From the sequence record NC_042136.1: 64,000 bases of DNA. One strand, 5' to 3'. The notes under the pieces are model-generated. The model saw only the letters and a list, made by a program, of their open reading frames with translations. It did not search any database and was not told where the DNA came from. Below, in pieces: positions 795-59,202 of the stretch (position 1 is its first letter; the number at the start of each line of letters is the position of its first letter). Position numbers and translations under genes: made by a program.

Positions 795-828
795 TAACTA
801 CCTACCTCCGAAAGGAGGTAGGTAGTTA
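795..828. terminator. bidirectional terminator hairpin with CCTACC core
   Basis: 15-bp stem TAACTACCTACCTCC/GGAGGTAGGTAGTTA, GAAA loop, between convergent genes. Confidence 0.85.
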
Positions 829-848
829 ACAGTTCTTTATTTTTTTGT

Positions 849-2618
849 CTAAGCTGCTTTCGGTAAAGCCTCACCGAATTCTTCTTCAAAGAGTTCTGGG
901 AAGACTTCTTCCATTTCTTCGAATCCCGGGAAACGATGTAACGTCTGACACAAACTCACCGCATTAGCTTTTGGCGAGGAAGCGTAGTTGACTCCGACTT
1001 CACGGAACTCCAATGGATTCAATCCTTGTATCGCACACGCTTCTATTCTCGTGGTCTTATTCGAAACGTTAAGCGCTACGGTGGCCGTAGGGTATGCACC
1101 CTCCACGTCAACGTCATCGGTTAAACCACGTCCTCTAGAACGTATGTGTGGCATCCCTATGAATATCGCTTTACCGTTATCCGCATTTTTCTCAGTTTCT
1201 AATAAAGCAATCCAATCACCCAATGTCGGTTTATGTTTATCCAATTCATCTTTACCACCACGTCCCTTGGTTCCCCAAATGTAACCATGCTCCGCAGCAA
1301 TGAAAGATAACTCGTTAGAGATACATTTCGGTTGAGATGGATAATCAAAGAACTCCGTAGACTTTAATAGCAATGGTAAGTTCAGTGCAATGTCGTTGGT
1401 TTTCTCATCTTGTTCTTCGATAACCAAGTTATCAGAGATGTTGTACATGCAGTATTCGAACTTAGCATTACGTTGCATCCATCTGTGCCAAGCACCTTTA
1501 CCTTGGGTTAGATGAGACCCTTTATCCGTGTAAAGCTTACCCTCGATGCCGTTGTCTTGTGCAGTGAATTCCAATGAGTAAGATTCTTTCTTACCTTTAG
1601 GAGCATTCTTAATCGCGTAGAAACTAGCACCGTCCAACCACTGCCATTTAGCCGCCGCTCGAACCGTAGGGTATTGCTCTTGCCACTCTAACGGTTGGGA
1701 GTCACCGTTCTCTTTACGTTTGTGAGTACGTCCCTTATCGTATTTGTAGTAATGAAACTCTTTAGGGATACTAGGGTCTGAGTAAACTTCTTCTAGATTA
1801 CGATTACCCATAATCAACGCATGTTCATTACGCTGCATATCGTAGGAAGCGTTCCATGATGAAATGAAATCTGGTTCCCACATATGCCAAACTTTAATGT
1901 TGTTCTCAACACATTCAGTTTGAGTATCCACTAAGTTGTAATGCACCGTAGCGTTACGTCGTCTTAGACGTTCACCGATCAGTTCTTCTTCTGACGCTTT
2001 AAGACCCTTCATGATCTCTTCGTCAGACATACCATCAAAGAAACTACGCACTACGGAGAAAAAGATTTTCTCTTTCATCGTAGTTGAAGCCATGATCACA
2101 TCTTCACCATCACCGTTGACCATATCGGTCTCTACGTCGTACGCAGCTAAGGTGGAAGGTTCAGTTTCTTGGAACTCTTCATAACGTTCAAAGTATTTGT
2201 GTTTGATCAATACTGGAACTGGGGTTTCACAACCAAAGACATAAGGGTTGTTTTTCATCATCATTAAGTCGGCGTTACGATCATTAATACCGTGTAACAC
2301 ACGCTTAATGCTCATCGCTAAACGCGCTTGTGTAGATTTATATTCTTTCACTAAACGTTTATCGATGTAATCTTTTTTCTGTTCGAACTTACGGTATTTT
2401 TCACGAACGATGTAGAATGAACGAACGTAATCCGCCACTTTCAAAAACTGATTGGTACGGTCACCGTTTTCATGGATAGTCGTTTGTTTAATGAACGTCA
2501 TATCCTTAAGCTTGTCTCGTTTTGAAGGAACGTAGACAGCGTGTTTGCACACTTTTCCTTTAACAGGAGATTCGCTCGAAGGCGGCGTGTAACTATAATC
2601 CATTTCAGCCTTCCTCAT
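849..2618 (-). CDS. family B DNA polymerase, N-terminal/3'-5' exonuclease half of a split polymerase (phiKZ gp82-like)
   Basis: ExoI AYDVETD, ExoII SWNASYD, ExoIII-like YNISD, PolB motif A variant DVEGAYPT near the C-terminus; motifs B and C absent. Confidence 0.8.
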   Translation of the reverse strand: MRKAEMDYSYTPPSSESPVKGKVCKHAVYVPSKRDKLKDMTFIKQTTIHENGDRTNQFLKVADYVRSFYIVREKYRKFEQKKDYIDKRLVKEYKSTQARLAMSIKRVLHGINDRNADLMMMKNNPYVFGCETPVPVLIKHKYFERYEEFQETEPSTLAAYDVETDMVNGDGEDVIMASTTMKEKIFFSVVRSFFDGMSDEEIMKGLKASEEELIGERLRRRNATVHYNLVDTQTECVENNIKVWHMWEPDFISSWNASYDMQRNEHALIMGNRNLEEVYSDPSIPKEFHYYKYDKGRTHKRKENGDSQPLEWQEQYPTVRAAAKWQWLDGASFYAIKNAPKGKKESYSLEFTAQDNGIEGKLYTDKGSHLTQGKGAWHRWMQRNAKFEYCMYNISDNLVIEEQDEKTNDIALNLPLLLKSTEFFDYPSQPKCISNELSFIAAEHGYIWGTKGRGGKDELDKHKPTLGDWIALLETEKNADNGKAIFIGMPHIRSRGRGLTDDVDVEGAYPTATVALNVSNKTTRIEACAIQGLNPLEFREVGVNYASSPKANAVSLCQTLHRFPGFEEMEEVFPELFEEEFGEALPKAA

Positions 2619-2685
2619 TTTATGACTGGATTGTATTTAGGTCTAGTATAATGCGCATTGTAGTAAATTTTTAAAGGTAATCCTA

Positions 2686-4020
2686 ATGATTAGTAATAAG
2701 TTTCTAGCACCACAACTTCAAGTAGCTGGTTTAGAATTTATGGATTTCCAATCTAAAGACTTCTTTAACGAGATCGTAGCAGTACTTGCTCCTATGGTTG
2801 TCGACGGACAACTACACGAAGTACCAGCTGCAACTCACCGTGTCATCGAGAAGTACTGTGGATTTGCGAACCTTAAATTCAATCTGATTGACTACGGCAA
2901 CTTAGCCATTGACACTGGCTATGTTTCTCCGGGCAACATCCTTAACTCTAAAGGTATCGAGTATTACTTCCCTAAAGGTCAAACTAACCTTTATCGTTGG
3001 TTTACTCAAAACCAGAGTAATTTGTTACGTGGTTCTATTGATTTCAAAACAGGTAAGGTAGGTGGCGCGTACGCTGAACTGCCATTCGAACTATACATCA
3101 ACACAGATCTACGTTCGTTTATTTCCGGTGACGATCTCGATGACCAAACGATTACAGAAATGCTGGCAGGTTTCTTAACTCATGAGTTAGGTCATGCTTT
3201 CTCTGGCATTTTCGCGATCCACCGTTTCCTAATGGATTCTTACGCAATCACCGCCGCACTCCATTTCTTAAGTCACCAAGAATACGGTCAGACTGAAGTA
3301 GCGATTTACAAAGATGCTTGTCGTTTGATGGAAATCGAAGAGAAGCAAATTAAAGACTTACAGAAGATTGCTGAATCTGGTAATGAAGAAATCATCGTGG
3401 CTTCTCTAACTAAGCTTGCTCAGCAACGCACCCAAATGAACTCCCAATCACTAGGTGTGGATGAGATGAACTCTGAGGTACTGGCGGACGTTTACGCGGT
3501 CCGTATGGGTTGTGATAAACACCTAATCGATGCACTAAAACGTATGGATGATTCTACGTTCGATGGTATTGGTTTGAGTATCCTTTTCAACTCTTTGATG
3601 ACGGCTATTTTCTTTACGGCCTTTGTTCCAGCTCTAGCGGTGTTCTTAGGTGTGTTCGTATTGGCTTCTGGTTTTATGTCATTGATGTTGTTCAACATGA
3701 CCATGAGTTCGGATATTTACGATACTTCTTACCGTCGCTTACTTAACGTTCATCAAGAACAAATTGCTCGTCTTAAACAGAACAAAACGCTATCGGCTAA
3801 TGATCGTCGTAAAATGCTCGCTGATTTGGATAAGAACCTTAAACTCATCAAAGAGAACAAACCGTTCTTCGAAGATACTGCGGTTCAGCGTGTCATGCAA
3901 TGGTTGTTCCAATCATCTACGTCTAACTTCGATGCTTTGGAACACTACACTAAAATCCTGCTTAACAATGAAATGAGTATTGTTAATGCGAAAATTCAAC
4001 AACTTGGTAATGGAGCGTAA
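2686..4020 (+). CDS. probable virion head protein with zincin/M48-like metallopeptidase motifs and membrane segment
   Basis: AGLE-F processing-like site at E17; HELGH at 166-170; SEVLADVYAVRMG (E264); about 45-aa hydrophobic stretch from residue 294. Confidence 0.65.
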   Translation: MISNKFLAPQLQVAGLEFMDFQSKDFFNEIVAVLAPMVVDGQLHEVPAATHRVIEKYCGFANLKFNLIDYGNLAIDTGYVSPGNILNSKGIEYYFPKGQTNLYRWFTQNQSNLLRGSIDFKTGKVGGAYAELPFELYINTDLRSFISGDDLDDQTITEMLAGFLTHELGHAFSGIFAIHRFLMDSYAITAALHFLSHQEYGQTEVAIYKDACRLMEIEEKQIKDLQKIAESGNEEIIVASLTKLAQQRTQMNSQSLGVDEMNSEVLADVYAVRMGCDKHLIDALKRMDDSTFDGIGLSILFNSLMTAIFFTAFVPALAVFLGVFVLASGFMSLMLFNMTMSSDIYDTSYRRLLNVHQEQIARLKQNKTLSANDRRKMLADLDKNLKLIKENKPFFEDTAVQRVMQWLFQSSTSNFDALEHYTKILLNNEMSIVNAKIQQLGNGA

Positions 4021-4022
4021 TA

Positions 4023-4427
4023 ATGTCTCACCTTAATCATATCCTGAAACTAAACTCTAAGTTGGTTGATCAAGGAATCACTAATCCTGAACACCATCAG
4101 TCGGTAACGACTAACGCCGTAGTACGTGCTATCGTAGCTTACACTTACATCACTGGTGGGATTGACGGTCCAGCTATGACTAATGAAGCGGTAGCGCAAA
4201 TGGAACGTACAGTAGAGATGTGGAACGAAGTTTCTCCATTGGACTACGACACGATTTTCGAACGCACTAAAGCTGTGTTCCAACGTCTTTACAACCAAGC
4301 GGTGGCTGGTGGTAAGTTCACTCCTATTCTGGCGGATCAAATCGACGATATTGATCTAATGGAAATTCCTGAGTTCGAAAGTACCTTCAAGGCACTCCTG
4401 AACGAAATGATCGCGTACAACCGCTAA
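4023..4427 (+). CDS. hypothetical protein in virion operon
   Basis: 134-aa ORF tightly coupled to neighbours. Confidence 0.75.
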   Translation: MSHLNHILKLNSKLVDQGITNPEHHQSVTTNAVVRAIVAYTYITGGIDGPAMTNEAVAQMERTVEMWNEVSPLDYDTIFERTKAVFQRLYNQAVAGGKFTPILADQIDDIDLMEIPEFESTFKALLNEMIAYNR

Positions 4428-4436
4428 GGAGCTACC

Positions 4437-5888: not shown

Positions 5889-6619
5889 TGATTCGTGATA
5901 TTAATAAACGCTATCGTAAGGTGCGTAACGATGTTCGAGAATACGAACCAACCGTAACGACGTTCAAAGAGAAAATCGATGAATTGTCTGATGCGATGAA
6001 GCGTCCTGTGAGTTACGACACTTTAATGGAGATGTGTAAAATTGCTGAAGCGCTACCTAGTGAAATCCGAGAGGTGAAACTTCGTTGCACTAAAGCACCT
6101 TCCCACATCAATGGTGAACAATTCCGTTATTGTGTCCGTCTTCGTAGCAACAACGGTTTCGTAGACGTAAGTGTCATCAACGAAGGTAATCGTTTGTTAC
6201 ACGCTTACTATGAGTTAGCGGAATTGATGATTAAGTACACCACGGAACATCTTCAAGCAAATCCTAGTGAAACAAACAATCATAAAGCGATTTGTTTGTT
6301 CCGTGACATTGCTCGTTTCCAAACTTACATCGACGGTCCTTACTACGATGACCGAATGGAAATAGACTGGGAACGCATTTCTCCTGATGTGGATTACCTC
6401 ACTAACGGTTACACCATCGAAACCGTTAAGGATCGTATTCTTAACATAGCGAAGCGTGACCAAGTTAAAGGTCTTTACATTTGGAACTTGAAGTGGGATG
6501 TTGATCGTTTGTTGTCTATGGTTAACGCTATGGAGCAACTCATCGCTCGCATCGCTATATTTGGTATCGCTCGATTAGAGCTAACACCAGAGCAACTGGA
6601 TGCTATCGATCCTCAATAA
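5888..6619 (+). CDS. hypothetical protein
   Basis: 243-aa ORF overlapping previous stop (TAATG). Confidence 0.75.
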   Translation: MIRDINKRYRKVRNDVREYEPTVTTFKEKIDELSDAMKRPVSYDTLMEMCKIAEALPSEIREVKLRCTKAPSHINGEQFRYCVRLRSNNGFVDVSVINEGNRLLHAYYELAELMIKYTTEHLQANPSETNNHKAICLFRDIARFQTYIDGPYYDDRMEIDWERISPDVDYLTNGYTIETVKDRILNIAKRDQVKGLYIWNLKWDVDRLLSMVNAMEQLIARIAIFGIARLELTPEQLDAIDPQ

Positions 6620-6626
6620 GCAAATA

Positions 6627-6659
6627 AAGTACTCCTACCCGATAAGGGTAGGAGTACTT
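6627..6659. terminator. bidirectional terminator hairpin with CCTACC core
   Basis: 14-bp stem AAGTACTCCTACCC/GGGTAGGAGTACTT between convergent genes. Confidence 0.85.
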
Positions 6660-6667
6660 ATGTTTTT

Positions 6668-15456: not shown

Positions 15457-16758
15457 ATGTCTTTATCTGTTAAAGCTATTTTAGCCGCGCAAGCAGGTTG
15501 TGAAGATCTATTACCTACACCACCGGTTGCCGATCCAGAACTAACTCCACTGGAACAACACGAGTTAGAAGATGACTTAGCCCACGCTAAGCTCGCTAAC
15601 GAAATTCAAGAGAACTCGAAAGAGATCCAAAAACTAGGCGATGCCGTAGAAACCATCGACGAAGAAGTCGAAGAACTGGAACAGGTTGTTGATGGCATGG
15701 AGTTCCTATGTGCTCAACCTGAACTGAATCGTGGTGCCATTGATATCCTTTACCGTCGTGCTGTTAAACTTTCTCACAACCTAGGGGGTGAAGAAGTCCA
15801 GCCGGTAGCGGGTAACGAATCACTAGCAACCGACGATGCTTACCGTGCGGAAGTTGTCGCTGGTTGTGAAGGTTTCATGGACACTGCTAAGAAGGCCTTT
15901 AAGTCTGCTGGTGATTTCATCAAACGACTGTTCTTCCGTTTGGTGGATAACGTGGTGGCGTTCTTTAAACTCTCTTCTGACTTAACAGCTAAAGCTGAGA
16001 AAATGAAGAAAGAGCACAAAGACCACAATGTTAAAGCTAAGATCAAGCTTGGTGCATGGAACCGTTGGATTGACAAAAATATGTCCAGCACAGATAGTCT
16101 GTTTGCCGACCTAGGTAAAGCTCAGCACAAGTTCTATGAAATCATCAAGAACAGCATGAATGTTACTGAGATCAACGAATCGCACTTAACGTCATTGCAA
16201 GGTGAAATCACTGAGTTATCTCATGCGTTTCAAAAGGCAGTGCGTGGTAACAGCGGAAACTTGATCATTTTTACTCTTGGTAGTGGACGTGAATACAAAA
16301 ACAGCCGTAACACCAACTCTGACAACTTGATCGAGTGGACTTATCCTGATGAGAGCAAGAGCAAGCCTGAGACACTGGATAAGACTGTTGCGGAATTCAG
16401 TTTCAAGTTGACCAACGGTAACCAAGAAGAATTCCAAACCAAAGCTGAGATCAGTGGTGAAGTGGATGCGTTATTTACCCACTCTCAGTTGGAAGGAATC
16501 CTTAACACGGTCATCAGCAATGCTGAATTGATCAAGTCGATCAAGAAAGATGCTGAAAGCGCTAAAAGCAATGTGTCTGATATCGTGAACCGTCTAACTA
16601 AGCTAGAGTCCGGTAAAGGTGACGACAAAGCCACTAAGGTGTACGTCGCTACGCTAAAAGCACTTGCGTCTAAGTACACTCAACTTTCTAACAATCTGTG
16701 TCGTTTGATCACAGAAATCGATAAAGCGAAACTGGCCGCGGTTAAAGCACACTACTAA
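15457..16758 (+). CDS. internal head protein, phiKZ_IP-like paralogue
   Basis: AGCE, DGME, GNE-S, AGCE-GFMDT sites; acidic coiled-coil propeptide; K-x-KLG-x-W motif shared with paralogues. Confidence 0.75.
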   Translation: MSLSVKAILAAQAGCEDLLPTPPVADPELTPLEQHELEDDLAHAKLANEIQENSKEIQKLGDAVETIDEEVEELEQVVDGMEFLCAQPELNRGAIDILYRRAVKLSHNLGGEEVQPVAGNESLATDDAYRAEVVAGCEGFMDTAKKAFKSAGDFIKRLFFRLVDNVVAFFKLSSDLTAKAEKMKKEHKDHNVKAKIKLGAWNRWIDKNMSSTDSLFADLGKAQHKFYEIIKNSMNVTEINESHLTSLQGEITELSHAFQKAVRGNSGNLIIFTLGSGREYKNSRNTNSDNLIEWTYPDESKSKPETLDKTVAEFSFKLTNGNQEEFQTKAEISGEVDALFTHSQLEGILNTVISNAELIKSIKKDAESAKSNVSDIVNRLTKLESGKGDDKATKVYVATLKALASKYTQLSNNLCRLITEIDKAKLAAVKAHY

Positions 16759-16762
16759 ATAA

Positions 16763-16790
16763 AAGGGTCGGGGTTACGGCCCCGACCCTT
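16763..16790 (+). terminator. intrinsic terminator hairpin
   Basis: 11-bp stem AAGGGTCGGGG/CCCCGACCCTT. Confidence 0.7.
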
Positions 16791-16823
16791 ATTATTGGTA
16801 ATTAAAGTCAAAAAGGAAAGGTA

Positions 16824-17993
16824 ATGAAAAACAACGTCACACAAGCTCTGCGTATTTTGGCAGGGATGGAATCAGCCCCAGTAGAACTTGATTTGGAACA
16901 ACAAACCGTATTGGTTGAAGAAGTGGAAACCGTGCGTGCCGAGAATGAAGCAAATGAAGTGGCTTCTGAAATCACGGCTATGGTGAAAGAATCTGACCAA
17001 CGTGTTGAACATGAAACTGAGCTCGAACAAGTAGTAGACGGTTTAGAGTTCCTAAAGCAAAACCCTAACCCACAAGCCATGGTTCTGCTTTACGACCGCG
17101 CTGATCGTCTGCACGTTAAGCTTGGTGGTCAAACCACTAAACCGCGTGCTGGTTTAGAATCTATCGATACTCGTACCTTGGATGCACACGTCATTGTAGG
17201 TTGTGAGTCTTTCATGGATACCCTAAAACAAGGTGCTGACAACACGTTACAATTCTTAAAGTCTATTTGGAAACGTTTGGTAGAATACTTCAAAGCGAAG
17301 TTCTCTGAAACCGGTAAGATGAAGAAGCGTGCTGAAGAACTTAAGAAAAAACTTCAAGATGGCGCTGAACTAAAAGACGACCCTAAAGCGGGTCCTTGGT
17401 ATCAATTCTTAGAATATGCTAAGAAAGGGTGTGGTGCATTCGCCGGTAGTATTACATCAATGATCGAAATAATCGGACTACTGAACAACGGTACCGGTGA
17501 ACAAGTCATCAAGACTGCTCCAATACTTCATTCAATGTGTGAAGACATCCGCAAAGGTTCGCCTTCAGGAGCATCGATCAAAAAGAATGGTATCTGGACG
17601 GTTAATGCCGACGAGGGCGCGTTGGTCATCTACCCAGAGAAAGTACCTACTAACGCAGATGATGCTGTCGAGTTCTTCACTAAAGTCCGTATGGAGCTTA
17701 AGAAGTTTGAAGCTCCTAAAACCCAACCTGTTCTTAAACAAGGCGATCGTTCTAACTTGATTTCGACGTGTGAAGTGGTTTTATCTAACTTAGAAGAGAT
17801 CGGTGTTCTACAGAAGAAGATCGAGAACCAAGAGAAAAGCTTGGAAACTTCTTTGAAAGACATCGATAAAGCCGAAGCTCGTTTGATCCGCGCACAAAAC
17901 AACGCGATTGTTCGTTTGAGCACGTCGTCTTTGAACATGCGCATCCGTTCATCTAAAGCTCTACTAGAAATGGTATCGGCTTACATTAAGTAA
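16824..17993 (+). CDS. internal head protein, phiKZ_IP-like paralogue
   Basis: AGME-S, DGLE-F, AGLE-S, VGCE-SFMDT; K-AGPW motif. Confidence 0.75.
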   Translation: MKNNVTQALRILAGMESAPVELDLEQQTVLVEEVETVRAENEANEVASEITAMVKESDQRVEHETELEQVVDGLEFLKQNPNPQAMVLLYDRADRLHVKLGGQTTKPRAGLESIDTRTLDAHVIVGCESFMDTLKQGADNTLQFLKSIWKRLVEYFKAKFSETGKMKKRAEELKKKLQDGAELKDDPKAGPWYQFLEYAKKGCGAFAGSITSMIEIIGLLNNGTGEQVIKTAPILHSMCEDIRKGSPSGASIKKNGIWTVNADEGALVIYPEKVPTNADDAVEFFTKVRMELKKFEAPKTQPVLKQGDRSNLISTCEVVLSNLEEIGVLQKKIENQEKSLETSLKDIDKAEARLIRAQNNAIVRLSTSSLNMRIRSSKALLEMVSAYIK

Positions 17994-18000
17994 CGTAGTC

Positions 18001-18070
18001 TAAGGTAATCTTCGGGTTACCTTATCTTAATCTATCACGGTGGATTAAGATAAGACCGGACGCGGTCTTA
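18001..18070 (+). other. three overlapping consecutive hairpins in intergenic region
   Basis: 18001-18024 (UUCG loop), 18022-18053 (11-bp stem), 18051-18070 (8-bp stem). Confidence 0.75.
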
Positions 18071-18094
18071 GTATAACCTCATGAGGAAAATATT

Positions 18095-19339
18095 ATGTCT
18101 ATCCGTAATAAACTATCAGCAATGGCTGGTATGGAATCTTTGTCCCGAGATGAAGTGACCGATGATCTCCATAAAACGATTGTTGAAAACGTTTTCGGTG
18201 ATGGAGATCAAAACTTATCTCCTTCTATTGAAGCAGAACAACAACAAGTAGACGAAGCATTAGCTGACGCTACCACTGATGTTGAAGAATCAGTAAAACT
18301 GGTAGAAACTTACCTTGAACAAGAACAAAGTCAAGAAGAAGCCGTACAAGACCTCCATAAAGCCGTAGACGGAATGGAACAGCTTTTGATGACCGAATAC
18401 ACACCGGCAACCTTAAACGCTCTCACGCGTCATACAGAGCGTTGTGCTAAACGTGTTGGTATTCCGTTTACTTTAGGTGTGTCCGGTATGGAGTCCTTTA
18501 CTCCAGCTTCTGTTTATCTGGCGATGCGTGACGGTCTGGAATCTCTTGGGAATGTAGAGCGTGATAACGTAGGTTCTATCAAAGGCGGGTATGAGCGTCT
18601 TACTCACATATGTGATGATGTTGAAAAGCGTTTTGATCGTTTACTCGTTAATTTAGAGTTACTTCGTAAACGTCTTAAAGACAACCCTGAAATCAAATCA
18701 GAGATCGCCTTAGGGGAATGGAACAAATGGTTAGACGTACGTGACCGTACACCTAGACCGATCGTTCGTCTCGTCAACTTGATGGAAGTGGAATACATCC
18801 TAGACCGTATTAAAGTCTTGGACCTCATTGCTAAAGATGACCTAACTTCAGCGAAAGCACAAGAGTTGTTATCTAAGGACGTTAAGAAGTCGGTTGATGT
18901 ATCTCGTGAACGCACCGAAGATGGTAAGAACCACACCACGTGGGAGTTCCGTTTCAACACAGCTTGTTTCTACTTTGATCTTCCTAATCAAAACGGTACT
19001 TCGTTAGAAGCCTTGAAGGTATATAACCTTCGTATGGAACCCGCGACAGATCGTTACAACTCGAAATCTAAGAATGTTTATCAGCATCTAGACACCATGT
19101 TTAGTGAGCTAGACGAAATGATTTCTATTGCTGAGGATACCCGCTCGACTTATGTTGATTGGCGTAAGTCACTAAAGACCGAAAGTGGTATGGTGGTTTC
19201 AGCATTACAATCCGGTAAAGTCGATCCTAGTAAAGCACTGGCTTACATCGGTTTACATAACCGATTCATGGTAACCGCGCAACGCGGTATTTTCGAAGTC
19301 ATTTCAGCGTACGAACATCTGTTCCGTGCCCACATCTAA
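18095..19339 (+). CDS. internal head protein, phiKZ_IP-like paralogue
   Basis: AGME-S, DGME, SGME-SF, DGLE-S; IALGEWNKW motif. Confidence 0.75.
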   Translation: MSIRNKLSAMAGMESLSRDEVTDDLHKTIVENVFGDGDQNLSPSIEAEQQQVDEALADATTDVEESVKLVETYLEQEQSQEEAVQDLHKAVDGMEQLLMTEYTPATLNALTRHTERCAKRVGIPFTLGVSGMESFTPASVYLAMRDGLESLGNVERDNVGSIKGGYERLTHICDDVEKRFDRLLVNLELLRKRLKDNPEIKSEIALGEWNKWLDVRDRTPRPIVRLVNLMEVEYILDRIKVLDLIAKDDLTSAKAQELLSKDVKKSVDVSRERTEDGKNHTTWEFRFNTACFYFDLPNQNGTSLEALKVYNLRMEPATDRYNSKSKNVYQHLDTMFSELDEMISIAEDTRSTYVDWRKSLKTESGMVVSALQSGKVDPSKALAYIGLHNRFMVTAQRGIFEVISAYEHLFRAHI

Positions 19340-19357
19340 CTTAACAAGGAACTTATT

Positions 19358-20587
19358 ATGGTTATGAAACATAACCCTTTGATTGCTGCCATGGGTATGA
19401 CACGTGTGGCGGGTTGCGAATCTCTGGATCCTTCTACCGATACGACTGAAGAAATCCCAGCGGTAGTTGAACCTACTGAAGAAGAGAAAGCTTTGTCGGA
19501 AGCTCAAGAAAAGCTGAACGAAGCAGAACAAACTCTAGGTGAAGTTCTCCAACAAGAACAAAATCACCAAGCCACGGTTAAAGAAGCAGAAGAAGCGATT
19601 GCTGGTCTAGAGTCTATGTTCCAAGGTGAGTTCGACGAAACAGTTTATCGTCAACACGTGAACACACTGCAAGGCATCAGTAAACACACACAAATTCCTC
19701 TGTCAGTGACTGTTGATGGCATGGAGTCTTTAAGCTCTGCTCAGATCTACCTGAATACCGTGAATGGTTTAGAGTCTTTCATGGATACATTGAAAGCCGC
19801 AGGTAAGACTATTAAAGAGTTGGTCATTAGAGCTTACAATGCTTTGCTTGACTTACTACGTTCATTTAAGAACTTATTCTTGGGTTTGAACGCTAAACTA
19901 GCAAACACTAAGAAACGTCTTGACGCAACGGACGAGATTAAACCTAAAGCTAAACTGGGTAAGTGGAATAAATACCTAGGTACCGAGCATTTCTCGCCAG
20001 CCGAAATTGGGTCTATGAAAATCTTAACGGAACTAATGGTTAAGGCTTCTGAAGTCAAAATCCGTGATATGGGATCCAAGGACGATCTAGCTCGTAAAAA
20101 GGCGGTTGACGAACTGGCTTATCTCATTGCTAACGAATATGGCTTTATCCAATCTAAAGACGTAGACCGCACAGCTAACAAAGAAACCTACTACATGCGC
20201 ATCGGTAACACGGAATTCGAATATACGGTTCCGATGCGTTCATTACCAGTGGATAGTCTCTTATCGTTTGGTTTTGATCTGAAGTTCATGAAAGACACTA
20301 AAGATTCCGGAGAAGTTAAGGTCTACTTGGACAAACGACACATGGCGGATGACTTAGACGAAACTATCGAATTCGCTAAACACGCGCGTGACACGTTTGA
20401 TGAGCTAGACAAAGTGATCAAACGAGAACGCGATTCTTTGGTAGCAGCCGTCCATAATCCTGAGAGTATGGACCGACCAATGTTATTAGAGGCGATCAAA
20501 ATCAAACGTTCGCTTATTGAAAAGACTGAGCGAAGCATCTTCCATATCTTAGAAGCTAAGAATAGTTTGTTCTCTGCTCACCTTTAG
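19358..20587 (+). CDS. internal head protein, phiKZ_IP-like paralogue
   Basis: AGCE-S, AGLE-S, DGME-S, NGLE-SFMDT; KAKLGKWNKY motif. Confidence 0.75.
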   Translation: MVMKHNPLIAAMGMTRVAGCESLDPSTDTTEEIPAVVEPTEEEKALSEAQEKLNEAEQTLGEVLQQEQNHQATVKEAEEAIAGLESMFQGEFDETVYRQHVNTLQGISKHTQIPLSVTVDGMESLSSAQIYLNTVNGLESFMDTLKAAGKTIKELVIRAYNALLDLLRSFKNLFLGLNAKLANTKKRLDATDEIKPKAKLGKWNKYLGTEHFSPAEIGSMKILTELMVKASEVKIRDMGSKDDLARKKAVDELAYLIANEYGFIQSKDVDRTANKETYYMRIGNTEFEYTVPMRSLPVDSLLSFGFDLKFMKDTKDSGEVKVYLDKRHMADDLDETIEFAKHARDTFDELDKVIKRERDSLVAAVHNPESMDRPMLLEAIKIKRSLIEKTERSIFHILEAKNSLFSAHL

Positions 20588-20732
20588 TCACGTATGCATT
20601 ACAGTAATTATATGTAGAATACTATAGTACTGTAGTGCTACGCTTTTCATCATTACTTCAGTGGTGGTGTTTAGATAATTTAATTAAATTCTCTAGTCAA
20701 AAGACTAAACTAATTTTAAAGGAAACATTGAT

Positions 20733-21959
20733 ATGTCTCAAATTCGTAATATGCTTATGGCTCAAGCTGGCATGGAATCTCTAGATGCAGCTGAAGTTGC
20801 ACAAGTTGAAAAGACAGCTGAAGAAGTAGCTGAGCTAGTAGCAGATAAAGCTGCTGAAGAAATCAAAGCTGAAGTAAATGAACTGGCTGACGAAGTTGAA
20901 GAACTGTCTGAAGAGATCGAAGAGATCGAAGAAGACGTTGAAGAACTTGAAGAATGTGTTGACGGTATGGAAGCGCTGCTTAAAGCAGGTTCTTTCAACG
21001 GTGCTGCATTCGGCCTTCTTTACAACCGTGCAGAAAAACTAAACCGTAAACTTGGTGGCGCTGAAACTGGTGCTGTTGTTGGTGCTGAGTCTCTAGGTGA
21101 CGCAACTTCTGCGACTCTAGCAGCTCGCGCTGGCATGGAAGGCTTCATGGAAACTGCACGCGGCTACAAAGACGCAGCAGTTAAATTCATCATGTCTATG
21201 TACGAATCTCTAAAATCATTCGTTAAAGGCCTGTTCGACAAATCTGTAGCGATCGAAAACCAAGTTAAAGCGACTACCGCTCGTCTTGAGAAAGCTGAGA
21301 AAATGAAAGAAGACGTTAAGCCGGGCAAATGGGCTTCACTGGCTCTACTTCGTGACTCTAACAAACTTCGCGCTATCGTTACCGCAGCTGACGCAGTAGT
21401 TTCTGCTGGTGCTAAACTAACAGCTAACGATGTAGCTGGTTACGCTGGCGCTTACCGTACGCTGAAGAACGCTATCGAGAACCTAGCGAAAGACGGTCAG
21501 TCTAAAGCGAACAAATCTGGTGACGGCACTACTCACCAAATCCACTTCGGTAAAGTTGTTATCAGCGCTACTGTATTCGACGGTGAGATCAAAGAACTTG
21601 CTGACGTAAACAAAGCGGCTAAAGTAACTACTATCTCTTACTCTGTTGCAAAACAAGAAGGCGAAGTTTCTTTCAACGCGCTAACTAAAGAGTCTGCGAA
21701 AGGCTTCCTAAAATCAGCAGCGGCTGATGGCGTAATGCTTAAATCAATGAAAGAAGCGAAAGCAGGTAACGAGAAAGGTCGTGACGAGCTAGTAGCTGCG
21801 CTTAAGAAAGTTGAAGGTAAGCAAGAAGATTGGGTTAAACCATCGATCTCTGCACTGAAAGCTTCTACAGCGATGACTAACCGTGTGTTCACTGTTGTTG
21901 CTAAGATCCTAGGTAACGTTGCTGACGCGAAAATCGCGGCAGTTAAAGCATACCTTTAA
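20733..21959 (+). CDS. major (high-copy) internal head protein, phiKZ_IP-like paralogue
   Basis: AGME-S, DGME-A, GAE-S, AGME-GFMET; codon bias as strong as the capsid gene. Confidence 0.8.
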   Translation: MSQIRNMLMAQAGMESLDAAEVAQVEKTAEEVAELVADKAAEEIKAEVNELADEVEELSEEIEEIEEDVEELEECVDGMEALLKAGSFNGAAFGLLYNRAEKLNRKLGGAETGAVVGAESLGDATSATLAARAGMEGFMETARGYKDAAVKFIMSMYESLKSFVKGLFDKSVAIENQVKATTARLEKAEKMKEDVKPGKWASLALLRDSNKLRAIVTAADAVVSAGAKLTANDVAGYAGAYRTLKNAIENLAKDGQSKANKSGDGTTHQIHFGKVVISATVFDGEIKELADVNKAAKVTTISYSVAKQEGEVSFNALTKESAKGFLKSAAADGVMLKSMKEAKAGNEKGRDELVAALKKVEGKQEDWVKPSISALKASTAMTNRVFTVVAKILGNVADAKIAAVKAYL

Positions 21960-24565: not shown

Positions 24566-24571
24566 TATAAA

Positions 24572-24597
24572 AGAGTGGGTCTTCACGGACCCACTCT
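24572..24597 (+). terminator. intrinsic terminator hairpin
   Basis: 10-bp stem AGAGTGGGTC/GACCCACTCT followed by T-rich run. Confidence 0.75.
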
Positions 24598-24636
24598 CTT
24601 TATTCGATTTTATGATTATTAACTAGGAGAGAGTTT

Positions 24637-33507: not shown

Positions 33508-33997
33508 ACGCGGTTTCTTTAGCCGTATGAGTCTGGATGGTTTTGTTAGTAAAGTCACCATCTCTAAGCGCGGATTGTTCGATATGCATTTTTCTATCTT
33601 CATCCGCCAAGACGTCACTTTACATCGTTCATTCATGGTGTGTGATTCCAATAAAAATTTGGAGAAAGACCGAGCAAGCGCGACCAAGAAAATTCAAGAC
33701 TTAATCGACACGCTGGATATCTATGTGGATCGTTTACGTGAGAAAGCCCTATATCAAGACTGTCGTCCTATAGGAGTTATGCGAGATCCTGTCACTAACG
33801 AATACCACGGAGAATCCAGCACGGTCTGCCTACAAACTGATAGAGATGAATGCATTTTTTGTATCACGAGTTGTGAACACAAACTGCGTCTGACTTTATC
33901 TCATGAAGAAACAGCTAAAATACTGGTTAAGATCATTGACCAGCTTCGATTACACCTAGCTGATATGAATCAGCTATTAGACGAATATCTTTCGTAA
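33491..33997 (+). CDS. hypothetical protein, paralogue of previous gene
   Basis: ATG 33491 (track uses TTG 33485); KKIQDLIDTLDIYVDRL. Confidence 0.75.
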   Translation: MKKLSRRGFFSRMSLDGFVSKVTISKRGLFDMHFSIFIRQDVTLHRSFMVCDSNKNLEKDRASATKKIQDLIDTLDIYVDRLREKALYQDCRPIGVMRDPVTNEYHGESSTVCLQTDRDECIFCITSCEHKLRLTLSHEETAKILVKIIDQLRLHLADMNQLLDEYLS

Positions 33998-38083: not shown

Positions 38084-38121
38084 AGAAGTTCCCTACCTCC
38101 ATTTGGAGGTAGGGAACTTCT
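38084..38121. terminator. bidirectional terminator hairpin with CCTACC core
   Basis: 17-bp perfect stem AGAAGTTCCCTACCTCC/GGAGGTAGGGAACTTCT between convergent genes. Confidence 0.85.
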
Positions 38122-42622: not shown

Positions 42623-42656
42623 ATAAACCCCACTGCCCAAAAGCAGTGGGGTTTAT
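42623..42656 (+). terminator. intrinsic terminator
   Basis: 14-bp stem ATAAACCCCACTGC/GCAGTGGGGTTTAT, T-rich tail. Confidence 0.85.
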
Positions 42657-50328: not shown

Positions 50329-50334
50329 GTTAAT

Positions 50335-50368
50335 CTTACCATCCTCCCCTAAGCGGGAGGATGGTAAG
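50335..50368 (+). terminator. intrinsic terminator hairpin
   Basis: 14-bp stem CTTACCATCCTCCC/GGGAGGATGGTAAG. Confidence 0.8.
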
Positions 50369-50382
50369 TATCTCTGCTTTAT

Positions 50383-50430: not shown

Positions 50431-50473
50431 TATACAAGTATTTAATCTACCAACTTTTATTAAGGATACTATT

Positions 50474-50920: not shown

Positions 50921-50961
50921 TTAAATCCCTTTAACATCCCCACAACAGAGAGATATTCATC

Positions 50962-51444: not shown

Positions 51445-51449
51445 AAGTT

Positions 51450-51490
51450 GGGTGGGGATGTTATGGGTCTACGGACTCATAACTCCATCC
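51450..51490 (+). terminator. intrinsic terminator
   Basis: GTTATGGGTC-TACG-GACTCATAAC stem plus outer pairs and T-run. Confidence 0.7.
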
Positions 51491-51524
51491 TCTTTATTTT
51501 TTTTGTTTAAATCAAGGTTATGAC

Positions 51525-51887: not shown

Positions 51888-51889
51888 TA

Positions 51890-51921
51890 CTTACCTACCG
51901 CCCTAGTGGACGGTAGGTAAG
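51890..51921. terminator. bidirectional terminator hairpin with CCTACC core
   Basis: 11-bp stem CTTACCTACCG/CGGTAGGTAAG between convergent genes. Confidence 0.8.
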
Positions 51922-51939
51922 CTATGTTATTTATTTTTT

Positions 51940-54819
51940 TTATTCTAAATCATCTTCTTCTTCTTCGGTTTCTTCCTCTTGCTCAGATTCTTCAGACTCA
52001 CCGTCTTTTTCTTCTTCGCTAGGTTCTTCCTCAGATTCTTCAGATTCTTCAGACTCACCTTCCGGTGTTTCTTCTTCGTTGAAGTCGTCCTCGAATTCAG
52101 GTTGTTCTTCTTCCGCAGGAGCGTCACCGATTGGATCCCCCTCACCATCAGGATTGTCTTGGAACTCGTCTTCTAACTCCCCTTTCGGTTGTGGCATCAT
52201 CTTGACCAGTTTCTCTGAACGCTTATCGAATTGTTTCTTGTATTCCACCATGAACAACGACAAGTTTTCATTGAAGTAATCCAGATCATTAAGCAGTGAG
52301 TACATGCCACCTTCACGACCTTTGTTGATGATGTCATCGAATGGTGTAGGTACGTTGAACAATTTAAAGGCACGGAAACGAATTACCGCAGCAAACTGTC
52401 TAGCGATTTCATCAGCGTCAATTTCTTCGACATCAACCCCAGCACGTTTCAGTAACGGTTCCATCAAGCCCTTCGTTGCTGACATCTCAATCACTTTCTC
52501 AGCCCAGTCTTCCGCTAATTCCATTTTCTCTTTAATCTTAGTTACAGACTCCATAGTGGTAGGAGCTGGCAACATAACAAAGAAGTTCTGGATAAAGTCA
52601 TTTAAGATAGTCATGACTTTAGTACGATCATCACCTTCAATAGTCGTTTTAGAATCTGGAACCCAAAGGTTCTTAGGTGTATCCATGATGGTGTCGATCA
52701 AGAGGTTCATTACGACTTCGTTTACCATCAAGTTTTTACGGATACAATCAGTTAAGAAATCCCCGAGTTGAGATTGATACATGATCGTTTGGTTACGTAA
52801 TGTTTCTTGTTCTGCTAACGCTTCTACTTGGAAGTTGTTACCGTTCTCATCTCGTTCGTCCAGCCAGCTACGCGGTAAACCAAAGAAGTTAGCGATAGAA
52901 CTTAACAAGTATTGACGAGAATCATCATCCACTCGACGGAAGTTAGTGCGATCCATTTGGTTCAACTGCATTTGAGGTGCGGTGATGAATTTGTTATCAC
53001 CAGCTTCCACACGTACTAACAGTGACTGTTCTTTCAACGCATCTACAATCATCGGCATAGATAACGTCCCAGTGGAGATCAAGTTGTGGACGGTAGGGTT
53101 CGATTTAAAGAACTCATAACGAGCCATACTGATGGTAGAGTCTGGATCCGTATCTTGGGACTCTAACGCTACCACTAACTCATTACGAGTTTGAGCGTTA
53201 TCGAGCTGAGCTAGAGCATCCGCAATATCCAATGCCGCCAGACGAGCGATGAAGTCTTTGGCTTGAGTAGTTAGAGACTCACCGATACCTAAACGGTTAT
53301 GTTGGAACGCCATGTACGTGAAGTAACATTCTGGAATGTACAACACCCGAGTACGTTGTTGTTGGAATGCACGTTCTAGGAACAGTTTCAGTACCGATTC
53401 TTCTAGATCGATAGAGATATCTTCTCCATCACCACCAGAATAAATAGACTGATACAATTCTTTCTCAATCTGAGTTTTCGCCAACATTGCGAATTCAGAC
53501 ATGTCGAAGTCACACTCACCACCTTGTTGAACTTTACGTAGATTAGAAATCAACATGTTGGTAGTCGTACCACCCGGCTTCTCATCGATCTTGCTGTTTT
53601 GTTTAGACAGCGACTGATAGAACTGGTAGTCCTTAGACATTTTCAAGAACTCACCGTTATCATCGATCAACGCATAAGCTCCGCGTAGACGTTTAACGTC
53701 ACCGTGAACGTGAATAGGGATGAAACACTCACTAGGAGGATGATAACCCAACGGAGTACCCCAAGGTGCTTGAGTGTAAACATTAGGCTTACGAATCGAC
53801 TGAGTGTGTTTCGTAGCAAAGTTACGAGCACCCGGCATGATTTGTTGTAACGCTTCTTGTTGAGCTAAGTTCAAGTTCTTGGTTTTAGCACCCGGGTTAG
53901 GTTGTTTCTTCCCTTTCTTAAGATCCGCGTTATCTTTGGAATCCAATACATCACTTTTCTCGAATCGGTTAGAAATGTAATTCTTTAACGACTCGTTACC
54001 TTGGATACGCTCCATGTTAACTTTTAGACGCTGGGTGACGTTACGCATCGCCAAACAACTCACGTTATCCGTTACCGTGATTCCAAAAGATTTGTCAATG
54101 ATAGGAAACTCGTAGTTATCTTCGTCCCCTGCACCCCAAATCGATTCCATACCACCAACTTTAGAAGCATTAGGATTACGAACAAACCCAACGTTCTTAG
54201 CCAGCAATTGTTTGGTTTCTTGATCTTCTTTGAATTCTTTGCGAATACCAGCATCTACTTCTTTACGGTAAGTCTCTGCACTAAAAGCTTCATTACCTTC
54301 AACTAACTGGTTGCCGTTAATCAGGTTATCCAAAGCAGGACGAGTAATGTTTAGCTTAACGTAACTACCACTACCCACCAAAAGGTCTCTAACGATGTCA
54401 GGGAGTTCCTGCTCGATTTTATAGTCGTTAGTGTAGTATTCACTTAAGATCTTTAAAAGACTTTCGTGCATTTTGGTGTTTTTGAATTTAGACGAATTCG
54501 AATCGTACTCTAAGACATTTTTTCTAGCACCGTTAGGGTGTAAGATTAACGTCTTCCAAATGATCTCCGCTTTACTAATGTACGGTGTGATTTTCTTTAA
54601 GTCTACCGTCGCATTAATTGAGTTAGCGATTATATCGCCTAAGCTTTTGAGCTTACGGTTCTGAATACGGCGAAGTTGTTCGTCTTCGTCCCCTCTACCA
54701 GCGGGACGTTCTTCTTCAACTCGTACATTCAAAATAGCTTCTACTGACTTAGGTATTTTCTTCACGTTCTTCCGCAACTCGGTGCGGTCGACACGTGTGT
54801 TACCTCTGTTTCCTGACAT
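51940..54819 (-). CDS. portal protein (phiKZ gp129-like)
   Basis: 959 aa, G-x-E sites at E177, E225, E276, about 80-aa D/E-rich C-tail; size, orientation and neighbours match the phiKZ portal locus as recalled. Confidence 0.65.
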   Translation of the reverse strand: MSGNRGNTRVDRTELRKNVKKIPKSVEAILNVRVEEERPAGRGDEDEQLRRIQNRKLKSLGDIIANSINATVDLKKITPYISKAEIIWKTLILHPNGARKNVLEYDSNSSKFKNTKMHESLLKILSEYYTNDYKIEQELPDIVRDLLVGSGSYVKLNITRPALDNLINGNQLVEGNEAFSAETYRKEVDAGIRKEFKEDQETKQLLAKNVGFVRNPNASKVGGMESIWGAGDEDNYEFPIIDKSFGITVTDNVSCLAMRNVTQRLKVNMERIQGNESLKNYISNRFEKSDVLDSKDNADLKKGKKQPNPGAKTKNLNLAQQEALQQIMPGARNFATKHTQSIRKPNVYTQAPWGTPLGYHPPSECFIPIHVHGDVKRLRGAYALIDDNGEFLKMSKDYQFYQSLSKQNSKIDEKPGGTTTNMLISNLRKVQQGGECDFDMSEFAMLAKTQIEKELYQSIYSGGDGEDISIDLEESVLKLFLERAFQQQRTRVLYIPECYFTYMAFQHNRLGIGESLTTQAKDFIARLAALDIADALAQLDNAQTRNELVVALESQDTDPDSTISMARYEFFKSNPTVHNLISTGTLSMPMIVDALKEQSLLVRVEAGDNKFITAPQMQLNQMDRTNFRRVDDDSRQYLLSSIANFFGLPRSWLDERDENGNNFQVEALAEQETLRNQTIMYQSQLGDFLTDCIRKNLMVNEVVMNLLIDTIMDTPKNLWVPDSKTTIEGDDRTKVMTILNDFIQNFFVMLPAPTTMESVTKIKEKMELAEDWAEKVIEMSATKGLMEPLLKRAGVDVEEIDADEIARQFAAVIRFRAFKLFNVPTPFDDIINKGREGGMYSLLNDLDYFNENLSLFMVEYKKQFDKRSEKLVKMMPQPKGELEDEFQDNPDGEGDPIGDAPAEEEQPEFEDDFNEEETPEGESEESEESEEEPSEEEKDGESEESEQEEETEEEEDDLE

Positions 54820-54839
54820 AACACCCTCTTGGATAAATT

Positions 54840-56948: not shown

Positions 56949-57277
56949 TACTCATATCACAATGGTATGGTTAACTCATTTATTAGAACAGCAAGTACGA
57001 TTNAGCAAGTACGATTATCTCTACCGGTGTTAATAAAGGCTAGACCGGAACCCGCTTTAGTCACTTCCGTAAAAGCTGAGGATGTACGCAACCATTTAGA
57101 AACGCTAGAGTTCCATATGGCGGGTACGGTGAAAGGTGACGTAGACATTAAACTTAACGAAGTTGTTGCTGATCGAGCAAGTACGATTCGCATTCCTATT
57201 ACCGTAGGAGTAAGAGAAGCAACGTGGGCTTATTAATACTCATATCACAATGGTATGGTTAACTCATTTATTAGAAC
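56729..57277 (+). repeat. 261-bp exact direct repeat separated by 13mer-N-13mer (probable assembly artefact)
   Basis: 56729-56989 equals 57017-57277; spacer AGCAAGTACGATT-N-AGCAAGTACGATT, the 13mer also at 56888-56900 inside the repeat. Confidence 0.9.
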
Positions 57278-57295
57278 GTAAAGGATTCCTTTAAC

Positions 57296-58210
57296 ATGGC
57301 AACCGAAAACGATATTATCAGAGAATCTGATAACTCCCGCGTGCCTGCGCAGATGGTCAGTATTCAGCCAATGGGTACAAACATCATGATCGCTAAGGCG
57401 TGTGACAAACCACTGAACATTCCACCTAACACCACCCTTAACGAACATCACGAAGTAGAAGCTACCAAATCACTCGGCATGAAAAACGGTGGTGACTTCC
57501 GTCTAGGTTACTTCGGTGTGGGGATCAAAGGTTATCAAATCGTAGGTAATCACCCGGTAACACAAATCCCGGTAAACTACACGAACCAACACCAACCGTT
57601 TGACCAAAACTTGTTCTACTCGATTCCGATGTGCGCTCGTCCTTTGGATGACGACTTGACGGAACAAGAACGTGAACCTTACCGTATGCGTACGGTTAAG
57701 ATCATCGATGGTGTTCCTACCGCGTTCTACTGGTTACACACCGTAGGTAGTGATGAATTCATTCCTAAGACCAAACGTGGTTATCGTAACCCATCAACCG
57801 GTAACGAAGTTCCTGAAGATTACGTGTATCGTCCAGAGTCCCTAAACCCGACTCCGATTGCGTTGAACTCTGACGGTACAGTTCCGCTATCTAACTCTTT
57901 CTTGATGTCTTCAGGTTTGTTAGATCTTTCTTTAACAGGTAGTCAGCTAGAAGAACTTCGTAACGTATGTCGTTTGCTGTTCGGTGATCCTAGCTTAGCG
58001 GCAGTCAGCGAATACCAGATCGTGTGGGGAATCGAATCCACTACCGAAGGTCAAGGTGCAGGTGGTACGACTTTCCGTTACAAAGAACTTATCTCAGCAG
58101 TTACTCAATACGTAGTATCAGAACGCCATGCGCGCGACGCCAACGCGAACGGTGAGATCGTATTGAAATTCGACCTAGGCGGAGCATACCCAATGCTCTT
58201 GGAAGAATGA
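57296..58210 (+). CDS. virion/baseplate protein (phiKZ gp127-like)
   Basis: 304 aa; FRLGYFGVGIKG; synteny. Confidence 0.5.
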   Translation: MATENDIIRESDNSRVPAQMVSIQPMGTNIMIAKACDKPLNIPPNTTLNEHHEVEATKSLGMKNGGDFRLGYFGVGIKGYQIVGNHPVTQIPVNYTNQHQPFDQNLFYSIPMCARPLDDDLTEQEREPYRMRTVKIIDGVPTAFYWLHTVGSDEFIPKTKRGYRNPSTGNEVPEDYVYRPESLNPTPIALNSDGTVPLSNSFLMSSGLLDLSLTGSQLEELRNVCRLLFGDPSLAAVSEYQIVWGIESTTEGQGAGGTTFRYKELISAVTQYVVSERHARDANANGEIVLKFDLGGAYPMLLEE

Positions 58211-58806
58211 TTGTATTACCTTTAAGCGAAGGCTGGGTACGATCAATAGCGATAGACCCATCTACTAAACGGATGGGTATATCGGTTATCGACATTAACT
58301 TAACGGAATGTGCGAAGTTTAAACTACAATGGGTGGAAACCATCCATGGTGAGAAACTGGAACATTACGGATCAGTTAACTATGATGACGACGGTGCGGT
58401 ACAATCTCGTATCCACGGTCTCTCTAAGAGCTATCGCCAACTCTTAGAGTTCTTTAAACCAACGATAGCGGTGTGTGAGGATAACTTCTTAGGAGCGTCC
58501 CCAGATACCTTTAAACGGTTAATAGAAGCTGTGTCTCTCTTACGTATGGAAACGGAATCCTACGGTGAAGGGTTGTACATGGTCAACGTTCCTCCTCGAG
58601 TTGCCAAAGAAACTGTTGGCGCTAACTTCAAAGGAACACAAAAAGAAGACGTGACCAAAGGGATCAAGAAGTACGAGGCGATTGATCTTAACGGACACGA
58701 CTTGGATGTACTCGATGAACACTCTATCGATGCTATAGCGATAAACTTAACGGTGTGTGAAAGAATCGCTAAAGATAGAGGAAAGTTCTATGAGTCAAAA
58801 AAATAA
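58207..58806 (+). CDS. ruvC: RuvC-like Holliday junction resolvase
   Basis: RNase H-fold catalytic pattern IAIDPSTKRMGISV, IAVCEDNF, KETVG...KEDV, EHSIDAIAI. Confidence 0.8.
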   Translation: MIVLPLSEGWVRSIAIDPSTKRMGISVIDINLTECAKFKLQWVETIHGEKLEHYGSVNYDDDGAVQSRIHGLSKSYRQLLEFFKPTIAVCEDNFLGASPDTFKRLIEAVSLLRMETESYGEGLYMVNVPPRVAKETVGANFKGTQKEDVTKGIKKYEAIDLNGHDLDVLDEHSIDAIAINLTVCERIAKDRGKFYESKK

Positions 58807-59155
58807 AGAACAACCTCAAACTTCCACTGAAGGCATCGTCCTAGGTAAATGGGGGACACGATTCCGTACGTTGTGTGGGATCGTCGCTGTACTTACTACT
58901 TGCTGGGTATCTTACTCTGGCATGAGTTCTATAGTAGCGTCTGTTAATGCTGGGAAAGGTTGGCCGAGTGACATGACTGTATTCCTTATTACGTTTGGCC
59001 CTGTGGCTATAGCGTGGCAATACATGAGTGTTAACAAACTGTTGTCCTTGTTATTCAGTTCTAATGATCCAACCGCGATCAATCTTAAAGATCGTTTGCG
59101 TGGGTTCTTGGATCCGAATGCGAAACCGGAAGGGAAGACCACAGGTTCTTCTTAA
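58790..59155 (+). CDS. two-TM membrane protein, candidate class II holin
   Basis: ATG 58790 with SD GAGGA (track start 58757); two hydrophobic helices and charged C-tail. Confidence 0.5.
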   Translation: MSQKNKEQPQTSTEGIVLGKWGTRFRTLCGIVAVLTTCWVSYSGMSSIVASVNAGKGWPSDMTVFLITFGPVAIAWQYMSVNKLLSLLFSSNDPTAINLKDRLRGFLDPNAKPEGKTTGSS

Positions 59156-59168
59156 TTAAAAAGTAATA

Positions 59169-59202
59169 AAACTCCCTACCTCCTTTCGGGGGTAGGGAGT
59201 TT
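59169..59202. terminator. bidirectional terminator hairpin with CCTACC core
   Basis: 15-bp stem AAACTCCCTACCTCC/GGGGGTAGGGAGTTT between convergent genes. Confidence 0.85.

Follow-up and report, generated by a model that had tools for sequence, protein, structure and literature searches.

Hairpins between convergent genes of Vibrio phage VP4B as probable bidirectional terminators of the phiKZ type

We analyzed a window of 64,000 nucleotides (nt) from sequence record NC_042136.1, which matches bases 124001–188000 of Vibrio phage VP4B with 100% identity (megablast). At five places in this window two genes converge tail to tail, and each of these junctions contains a palindromic hairpin with the same stem word. 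As judged from the DNA sequence, these five hairpins are probably bidirectional intrinsic terminators of the type known from the chimallivirus phiKZ, in a local version of the published motif. Since elements of this kind have been described in phiKZ and in 201phi2-1, the finding is real but mostly ordinary. VP4B has a genome of 236 kb and is classified in the subfamily Gorgonvirinae of the Chimalliviridae. Its annotation includes a nuclear shell protein and several split RNA polymerase beta genes, which identifies VP4B as a phiKZ-like, nucleus-forming jumbo phage with its own multisubunit polymerases.

Hairpins at the convergent junctions

The original prediction, made from the letters of the window, listed exactly five tail-to-tail junctions and assigned to each a hairpin with CCTACC and GGTAGG in its arms. 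The RefSeq annotation contains the same five junctions at the same coordinates, and all five hairpins are found where they were predicted, with perfect or near-perfect stems (Table 1). The 5′ arm always contains CCTACC and the 3′ arm GGTAGG, and these five structures account for 10 of the window's 26 CCTACC sites. The hairpins start 3–14 nt past the stop of the + strand gene and end 9–22 nt short of the stop of the − strand gene. Their folding energies range from −23 to −33 kcal/mol on both strands, with z-scores from −5 to −8. Loops and flanks had been described as different from one hairpin to the next; for the flanks this is only partly correct, since several members share the outer stem bases ATAA before and TTAT after the hairpin. 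An Rfam gathering scan and a tRNA scan of the window gave no matches.

Table 1. Hairpins in the window. Positions count from the first base of the window; hexamer, CCTACC in the 5′ arm; G-poor class, at most 1 G in the 5′ arm.
Element	Position	Strand	Location	Stem and loop	Tails
Convergent hairpin	795..828		between gp106 (+, ends 788) and DNA polymerase gene gp107 (−, ends 849)	15 pairs, GAAA/TTTC loop, hexamer in 5′ arm	
Convergent hairpin	6627..6659		between gp111 (+, ends 6619) and gp112 (−, ends 6668)	14 pairs, 5-nt loop	T-run on + strand, TTTAT on − strand
Convergent hairpin	38084..38121		between gp140 (+, ends 38076) and DnaB-like helicase gene gp141 (−, ends 38143)	17 pairs	weak on − strand
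Convergent hairpin	51890..51921		between gp152 (+, ends 51887) and virion structural protein gene gp153 (−, ends 51940)	13 pairs and one C.A/G.T position	
Convergent hairpin	59169..59202		between gp158 (+, ends 59155) and gp159 (−, ends 59219)	14 pairs and one T.G wobble	weak on + strand, TTTTAT on − strand
Co-directional hairpin, G-poor class	293..327	+		15 pairs, ATAA...TTAT outer stem, without exact hexamer	
Co-directional hairpin, G-poor class	50335..50368	+		14 pairs, without exact hexamer	
Co-directional terminator-like hairpin (comparator)	16761..16792	+		opposite polarity (G-rich 5′ arm)	TTAT
Co-directional terminator-like hairpin (comparator)	24569..24600	+		opposite polarity	
Co-directional hairpin (comparator)	42623..42656	+	after major head protein gene	C-rich 5′ arm with one G, without hexamer	

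Three left arms contain ACCTCC and two right arms contain GGAGGT, as had been counted before. A reading of these motifs as anti-Shine–Dalgarno (anti-SD) and Shine–Dalgarno (SD) sequences was rejected: no gene starts after the GGAGG arm at the convergent junctions, and the motif is paired in the stem. The matches are by-products of the CCTCC/GGAGG inner stem.

Eight other strong intergenic hairpins in the window (at 293, 16761, 18021, 24569, 34879, 42623, 50335 and 63813) do not contain the hexamer. Among the 13 hairpins, the five with the core are exactly the five at convergent junctions (p = 0.0008), which bears out the earlier statement that none of the co-directional terminators examined there carries it.

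Counts over the whole VP4B genome and its relatives qualify this picture. We compared VP4B with phages pTD1 (∼80% DNA identity) and Aphrodite1 (∼75%); all three are Gorgonvirinae, so that counts pooled over them are not independent. Convergent junctions were taken from the RefSeq annotations and co-directional classes from a simple open reading frame (ORF) caller. VP4B has 16 convergent junctions with a strong hairpin at every one of them. Nine of these hairpins contain the hexamer, one contains it in reverse polarity, four are close G-poor variants and two are unrelated or mixed; three junctions have identical 15-base arms. The hexamer is thus enriched at convergent junctions (9/16) relative to strong co-directional hairpins (4/38, p = 0.0008), but it is not exclusive to them. 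Two more co-directional hairpins of VP4B carry the reverse-polarity hexamer, and in pTD1 the hexamer occurs in 5/32 co-directional hairpins.

Hairpins of a long, near-perfect type with a G-poor 5′ arm account for 40/48 convergent versus 33/108 co-directional hairpins in the three phages (p = 9e-10). Inside this class the hexamer is found in 19/40 convergent and 12/33 co-directional members (p = 0.35). Since the hexamer is equally frequent at both types of junction once the class is held constant, it is the class and not the hexamer that marks convergent junctions. CCTACC/GGTAGG is the commonest word of the G-poor hairpin class in the VP4B/pTD1 lineage and no separate signal for convergent junctions. 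The best explanation for why these junctions stand out is that a strong stop is required at each and that almost every one has a hairpin of the G-poor class, whereas co-directional junctions use a mixture of classes.

Terminator features and conservation

Strong hairpins occupy 100% of the convergent, ∼20% of the co-directional and 2/47 of the divergent junctions in the three phages. Their near-absence from divergent junctions is what one would expect of a signal at the 3′ ends of transcripts, and it speaks against a strand-switch marker at the DNA level. With arms of ∼14 bp and energies of ∼−24 kcal/mol, the convergent hairpins exceed the co-directional ones in both length and stability (−17 to −21 kcal/mol; in every genome p < 1e-4). 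The 12 nt that follow them contain 54% T in both directions (96 directions), compared to 28% in the genome, and in 58% of the directions at least 6 of the first 10 nt are T. In 53% of the directions TTAT is found between −3 and +6 relative to the stem end, as opposed to a background of 4%. For co-directional hairpins, T enrichment is mainly seen in the sense direction. Occupancy of 48/48 convergent junctions, T-rich tails both ways and the near-absence at divergent junctions all support the function as bidirectional stop signal that the original prediction had proposed first.

How such a stop may work can be sketched along the general model of intrinsic termination. Each transcript would contain a C/T-rich, G-poor 5′ arm, a short loop and a G-rich 3′ arm, followed by a T-rich stretch that often includes TTAT. 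An RNA hairpin of 13–17 bp in the exit channel, together with a weak U-rich hybrid, would then lead to release of the transcript. Because the palindrome is near-perfect and its outer bases are ATAA and TTAT, both converging transcripts would see the same signal. The two-way stop would keep both polymerases from reading antisense into the opposite gene. The sequence shows the anatomy, positions, tails, conservation and distribution of the hairpins; that transcripts end at them, and which polymerase responds, we infer.

The same 16 convergent junctions are present in syntenic positions in pTD1 and Aphrodite1, and all 48 contain a hairpin. The arms of orthologous hairpins differ by 8% between VP4B and pTD1 and by 22–24% between either of these phages and Aphrodite1. 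Loops diverge by 60–67% and the 20-nt flanks by 29–42%. Almost every change in one arm is matched in the opposite arm (17/17, 49/50 and 52/53), and the stems remain almost perfectly paired. These arm and pair counts were obtained with a loop-anchored script; a MAFFT alignment of 29 hairpins contained gaps and register shifts and was not used for counting. This pattern of compensatory evolution indicates that the pairing is under selection. The imperfect hairpin at 51890 has a perfectly paired orthologue in pTD1. Peculiarities of individual junctions are kept across the three phages, which implies that the hairpins are mostly inherited in place.

The exact hexamer is retained at 8/16 junctions in pTD1 and at 3/16 in Aphrodite1, where paired substitutions have converted it to neighboring words. 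The earlier claim that sequence and not only structure is conserved must therefore be weakened: the hexamer is often lost. What may stand is a soft sequence preference, as suggested by a strict arm polarity and by an excess of the word in the distant phage EL (see below).

The polarity is visible in the substitutions themselves. In orthologous hairpins the stem pairs interchange among C-G, T-A and A-T, and almost never become G-C. The two pairs that close the loop are C-G in 41/42 and 42/42 hairpins. As both strands of a palindrome have the same sequence, the C-rich arm is the first that any transcript meets, and the orientation of the hairpin relative to the genes is uninformative. At co-directional sites, T tails in the sense direction are equal for hairpins with G-poor and with G-rich 5′ arms. 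Since tails are alike across the polarity classes, they do not explain the polarity bias.

Related systems and alternative explanations

The closest documented parallel is phiKZ itself. Long-read mapping of transcripts of this Pseudomonas phage revealed 133 terminators. A conserved motif, in which a C-rich 5′ arm, a short loop and a G-rich 3′ arm are followed by TTAT, is common to 61 of them (PMC10914365). Six bidirectional regions lie between convergent genes (Putzeys et al. 2024, PMC10914365). In our own scan of 200 kb of phiKZ (all but the last 80 kb), a hairpin was present at 16/16 convergent junctions examined. The phiKZ word occurs at 14/16 of these, compared to 13/38 co-directional hairpins (p = 0.0007), and the convergent palindromes are flanked by ATAA before and TAT(G) after the stem. 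The hairpins of phiKZ and VP4B are alike in their pyrimidine-rich, G-poor 5′ arm, the loop of ∼4 nt, the purine-rich 3′ arm and the TTAT right after the stem. Both phages are chimalliviruses with multisubunit polymerases of their own, and in both the hairpins are distributed across the genome and include bidirectional cases between convergent genes. They differ in the stem word, which is of the CCCTCC type in phiKZ and of the CCTACC type in VP4B, and in stem length (8–12 bp in phiKZ, 13–17 bp in VP4B). The terminators of phiKZ were mapped on transcripts, whereas those of VP4B are predicted from sequence.

Pseudomonas phage 201phi2-1 provides a second example, which we compared with VP4B by description only. 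Its main terminator motif resembles that of phiKZ, and 15 of its terminators were assigned as bidirectional (PMC11512511). In a reporter assay these terminators were active in the uninfected host, and longer stems made them stronger (PMC11512511). Like VP4B, 201phi2-1 therefore has terminator hairpins with conserved sequences (motifs A and B) and bidirectional members, and the better termination by longer stems is consistent with the long stems at VP4B convergent junctions. The 201phi2-1 motifs were derived from mapped 3′ ends and reporter measurements; the VP4B hairpins were recognized in the genome sequence.

Two bacterial systems also invite comparison. Bidirectional intrinsic terminators of bacteria are symmetric hairpins between convergent genes, flanked by A- and U-tracts. 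The VP4B hairpins resemble them as near-perfect palindromes between two stops, A-rich on one side and T-rich on the other. We know of no bacterial genome in which such terminators share a stem word or a fixed arm polarity; the VP4B hairpins have both. Repetitive extragenic palindromic sequences and bacterial interspersed mosaic elements (REP/BIME) of enterobacteria are likewise a family of similar palindromes dispersed between genes, at their 3′ ends. REPs are chromosomal, linked to a dedicated transposase-like protein, and variably present between strains. In contrast, the VP4B hairpins are fixed at orthologous junctions and come with terminator tails.

The stem word recurs in more distant chimalliviruses. 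In 150 kb of EL (all but 61 kb), a strong hairpin was found at 9/10 convergent junctions. Eight of these nine hairpins are G-poor and five contain CCTACC, compared to a mean of 0.46 in composition shuffles. To survey sequence databases we used an exact 9-base word, followed by a loop of 3–8 nt and the complement of the word. Among 2.9 million viral contigs (IMG/VR), 62 stretches contain this 9+9-base hairpin. About 50 of the 62 are located in contigs of 205–250 kb, including EL, SPN3US, Wellington, RisingSun and relatives of VP4B, and 40 of the 62 lie between convergent ORFs. Proteins from eight metagenomic or unidentified loci that we tested are only 21–28% identical to proteins of phiKZ or VP4B. 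The reverse-polarity control returned 33 scattered stretches, one of them in a contig >200 kb and five of them convergent. In 596 Gb of bacterial and archaeal genomes we found 61 exact matches, which compares to a rough chance estimate of ∼50. An origin of the hairpin in the hosts was rejected, as these matches are at about chance level and none is in a host genus. The concentration in viral contigs of 205–250 kb together with the chance-level matches in bacteria and archaea implies that the word is typical of chimalliviruses and is not borrowed from their hosts. As a separate observation, 36 nt over the hairpin are 97% identical between Erwinia phage RisingSun (L057:6341–6376) and Vibrio phage phiKT1019 (81821–81855), and this stretch was the sole match between both phages in a 4-kb megablast query.

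Several observations weigh against the assignment as phiKZ-type bidirectional terminators. The strict polarity, with C almost always in the 5′ arm of the GC pairs, is unexplained by bidirectionality or by tails. T tails are poor in two of the ten transcript directions of the window (− at 38084 and + at 59169). The published phiKZ consensus, searched with up to three mismatches, had no match in the window, VP4B, pTD1 or Aphrodite1, compared to 30 matches in the 200 kb of phiKZ; membership in the phiKZ type is thus based on architecture only. The literature we searched contained no transcript 3′-end data for VP4B or close relatives, and no papers describing terminators of VP4B, pTD1 or Aphrodite1. 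Finally, the frequency of the hexamer is far above that in composition shuffles in VP4B (9/16) and pTD1 (8/16), and independently in EL (5/9), which hints at an additional constraint at the level of sequence. Neither the strict arm polarity nor the reappearance of one word in chimalliviruses as distant as EL and VP4B is accounted for by this assignment.

These regularities are the reason to consider that the hairpins terminate transcription or mark 3′ ends, but that word and polarity are a sequence-specific signal read by a phage-encoded factor. We regard this as a rather unlikely, though the least unlikely, alternative. The reader of the word could be a polymerase subunit, a termination protein or an RNA-binding protein, or the word could be a 3′-end tag that serves to stabilize the RNA or to export it from the phage nucleus. 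This explanation would account for the near-absolute polarity of the loop-closing pairs, for the excess of the hexamer over shuffles even in EL, and for the concentration of the 9+9-base hairpin in contigs of 205–250 kb while the reverse-polarity control is scattered and bacteria are at chance level. It is harder to reconcile with the free replacement of the hexamer by paired changes at orthologous junctions, which leaves 3/16 in Aphrodite1, and with the different word in phiKZ. The terminators of 201phi2-1 are active in uninfected cells without phage factors (PMC11512511), and our analysis identified no candidate factor. In a similarly tentative form, the G-poor 5′ arm, the polarity and the recurring word CCTACC(T)CC/GG(A)GGTAGG might constitute a soft but real sequence code read by a conserved phage component, which would set the hairpins apart from generic intrinsic terminators. 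Such a putative code may be common to the chimalliviruses of Vibrio, Pseudomonas (EL), Salmonella (SPN3US) and Erwinia, and its reader could be the unusual multisubunit polymerases or a protein that handles mRNA 3′ ends in or at the phage nucleus.

Somewhat less probable still is that the hairpins are mainly 3′ protective structures or processing sites, with read-through transcripts trimmed back to the stem. Other intergenic palindromes such as REP elements are known in such roles, and the very stable stems (−23 to −33 kcal/mol) as well as the two weak tails would agree with them. Contrary evidence comes from the T-rich tails with TTAT, which follow the stem immediately in either direction and much more often than the background predicts. 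Moreover, the hairpins of phiKZ and 201phi2-1 were mapped as ends of primary transcripts, and those of 201phi2-1 stop a reporter (PMC10914365, PMC11512511). A role in stabilizing or processing 3′ ends in addition to termination is possible.

The two remaining suggestions of the original prediction are poorly supported. A small mobile or dispersed repeat, akin to a miniature inverted-repeat transposable element (MITE) or REP, that landed between genes would produce a family of similar palindromes and could explain two identical 32-nt hairpins in pTD1 with a differing VP4B orthologue, but it is very improbable given that 16/16 convergent junctions are occupied in three phages, that junction-specific stem variants are inherited, that flanks are unshared, that there is no presence/absence polymorphism, and that divergent junctions lack the element (2/47 with any strong hairpin). 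Least probable of all is a role at the DNA level, with the palindromes forming cruciforms or binding proteins so as to mark strand switches in replication, recombination or packaging: the perfect palindromy of the DNA and the SbcCD-like proteins encoded by the phage would suit it, but the divergent strand switches do without such palindromes (2/47), the same hairpin class occurs at co-directional 3′ ends, and the direction-specific T tails fit a signal at the RNA level.

With bidirectional termination as the preferred explanation, the hairpins provide an RNA-free terminator map for the Vibrio jumbo phages of the Gorgonvirinae, with one terminator predicted at each of the 16 conserved convergent junctions and further ones at co-directional junctions. 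They would also extend the phenomenon of conserved terminators from phiKZ and 201phi2-1 to chimalliviruses of four host genera. If polarity and word reflect the needs of a polymerase or of an RNA-handling factor, they open a way to study how these poorly understood phage polymerases terminate; if not, the hairpins are still good annotation markers for transcription units. Within our limited literature search, two regularities seem to be described here for the first time: the near-universal presence of one hairpin class at convergent junctions, also in phiKZ and EL, and the polarity that is kept through compensatory evolution.

Individual junctions and other hairpin groups

A second group of co-directional, terminator-like hairpins has a G-rich 5′ arm. 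Its members include the two comparators of opposite polarity in the window (16761–16792 and 24569–24600) and hairpins at 33933, 35350 and 78119 of the VP4B record. The reverse word GGTAGG...CCTACC is present in some hairpins of this group. Genes gp119–gp123 (window 15457–21959) are five tandem paralogous genes for internal head proteins, and at least two of the gaps among them contain co-directional hairpins of other sequence classes (16761–16792 and 18021–54).

The identical hairpins of pTD1 are located at two convergent junctions (record 52771–52802 and 73632–73663). The VP4B orthologue of the second site (cf. window 38084–38121) has a different outer stem and a different loop. This suggests that one family member is occasionally replaced by a copy of another. 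The first of these pTD1 hairpins corresponds to window 59169–59202, and relative to the orthologous flanking genes the center of the hairpin, consisting of the loop and the adjacent T.G, is inverted between the two phages. This resembles a flip of the segment enclosed by the arms.

Two long convergent junctions of VP4B lie outside the window. The first is a 370-nt junction (record 74655–75026) where pTD1 and Aphrodite1 have a thymidylate kinase gene. At this locus VP4B has only a short C-terminal remnant of 43 amino acids with 42% identity (tblastn). Because nothing but this remnant is left, the VP4B gene appears to have been broken once, by a large deletion. The second is a convergent intergenic region of 220 nt (record 118360–118581) before the RNA polymerase beta gene gp100. 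It has a terminator hairpin at one end only, and the ∼170 nt outside this hairpin carry no annotation.

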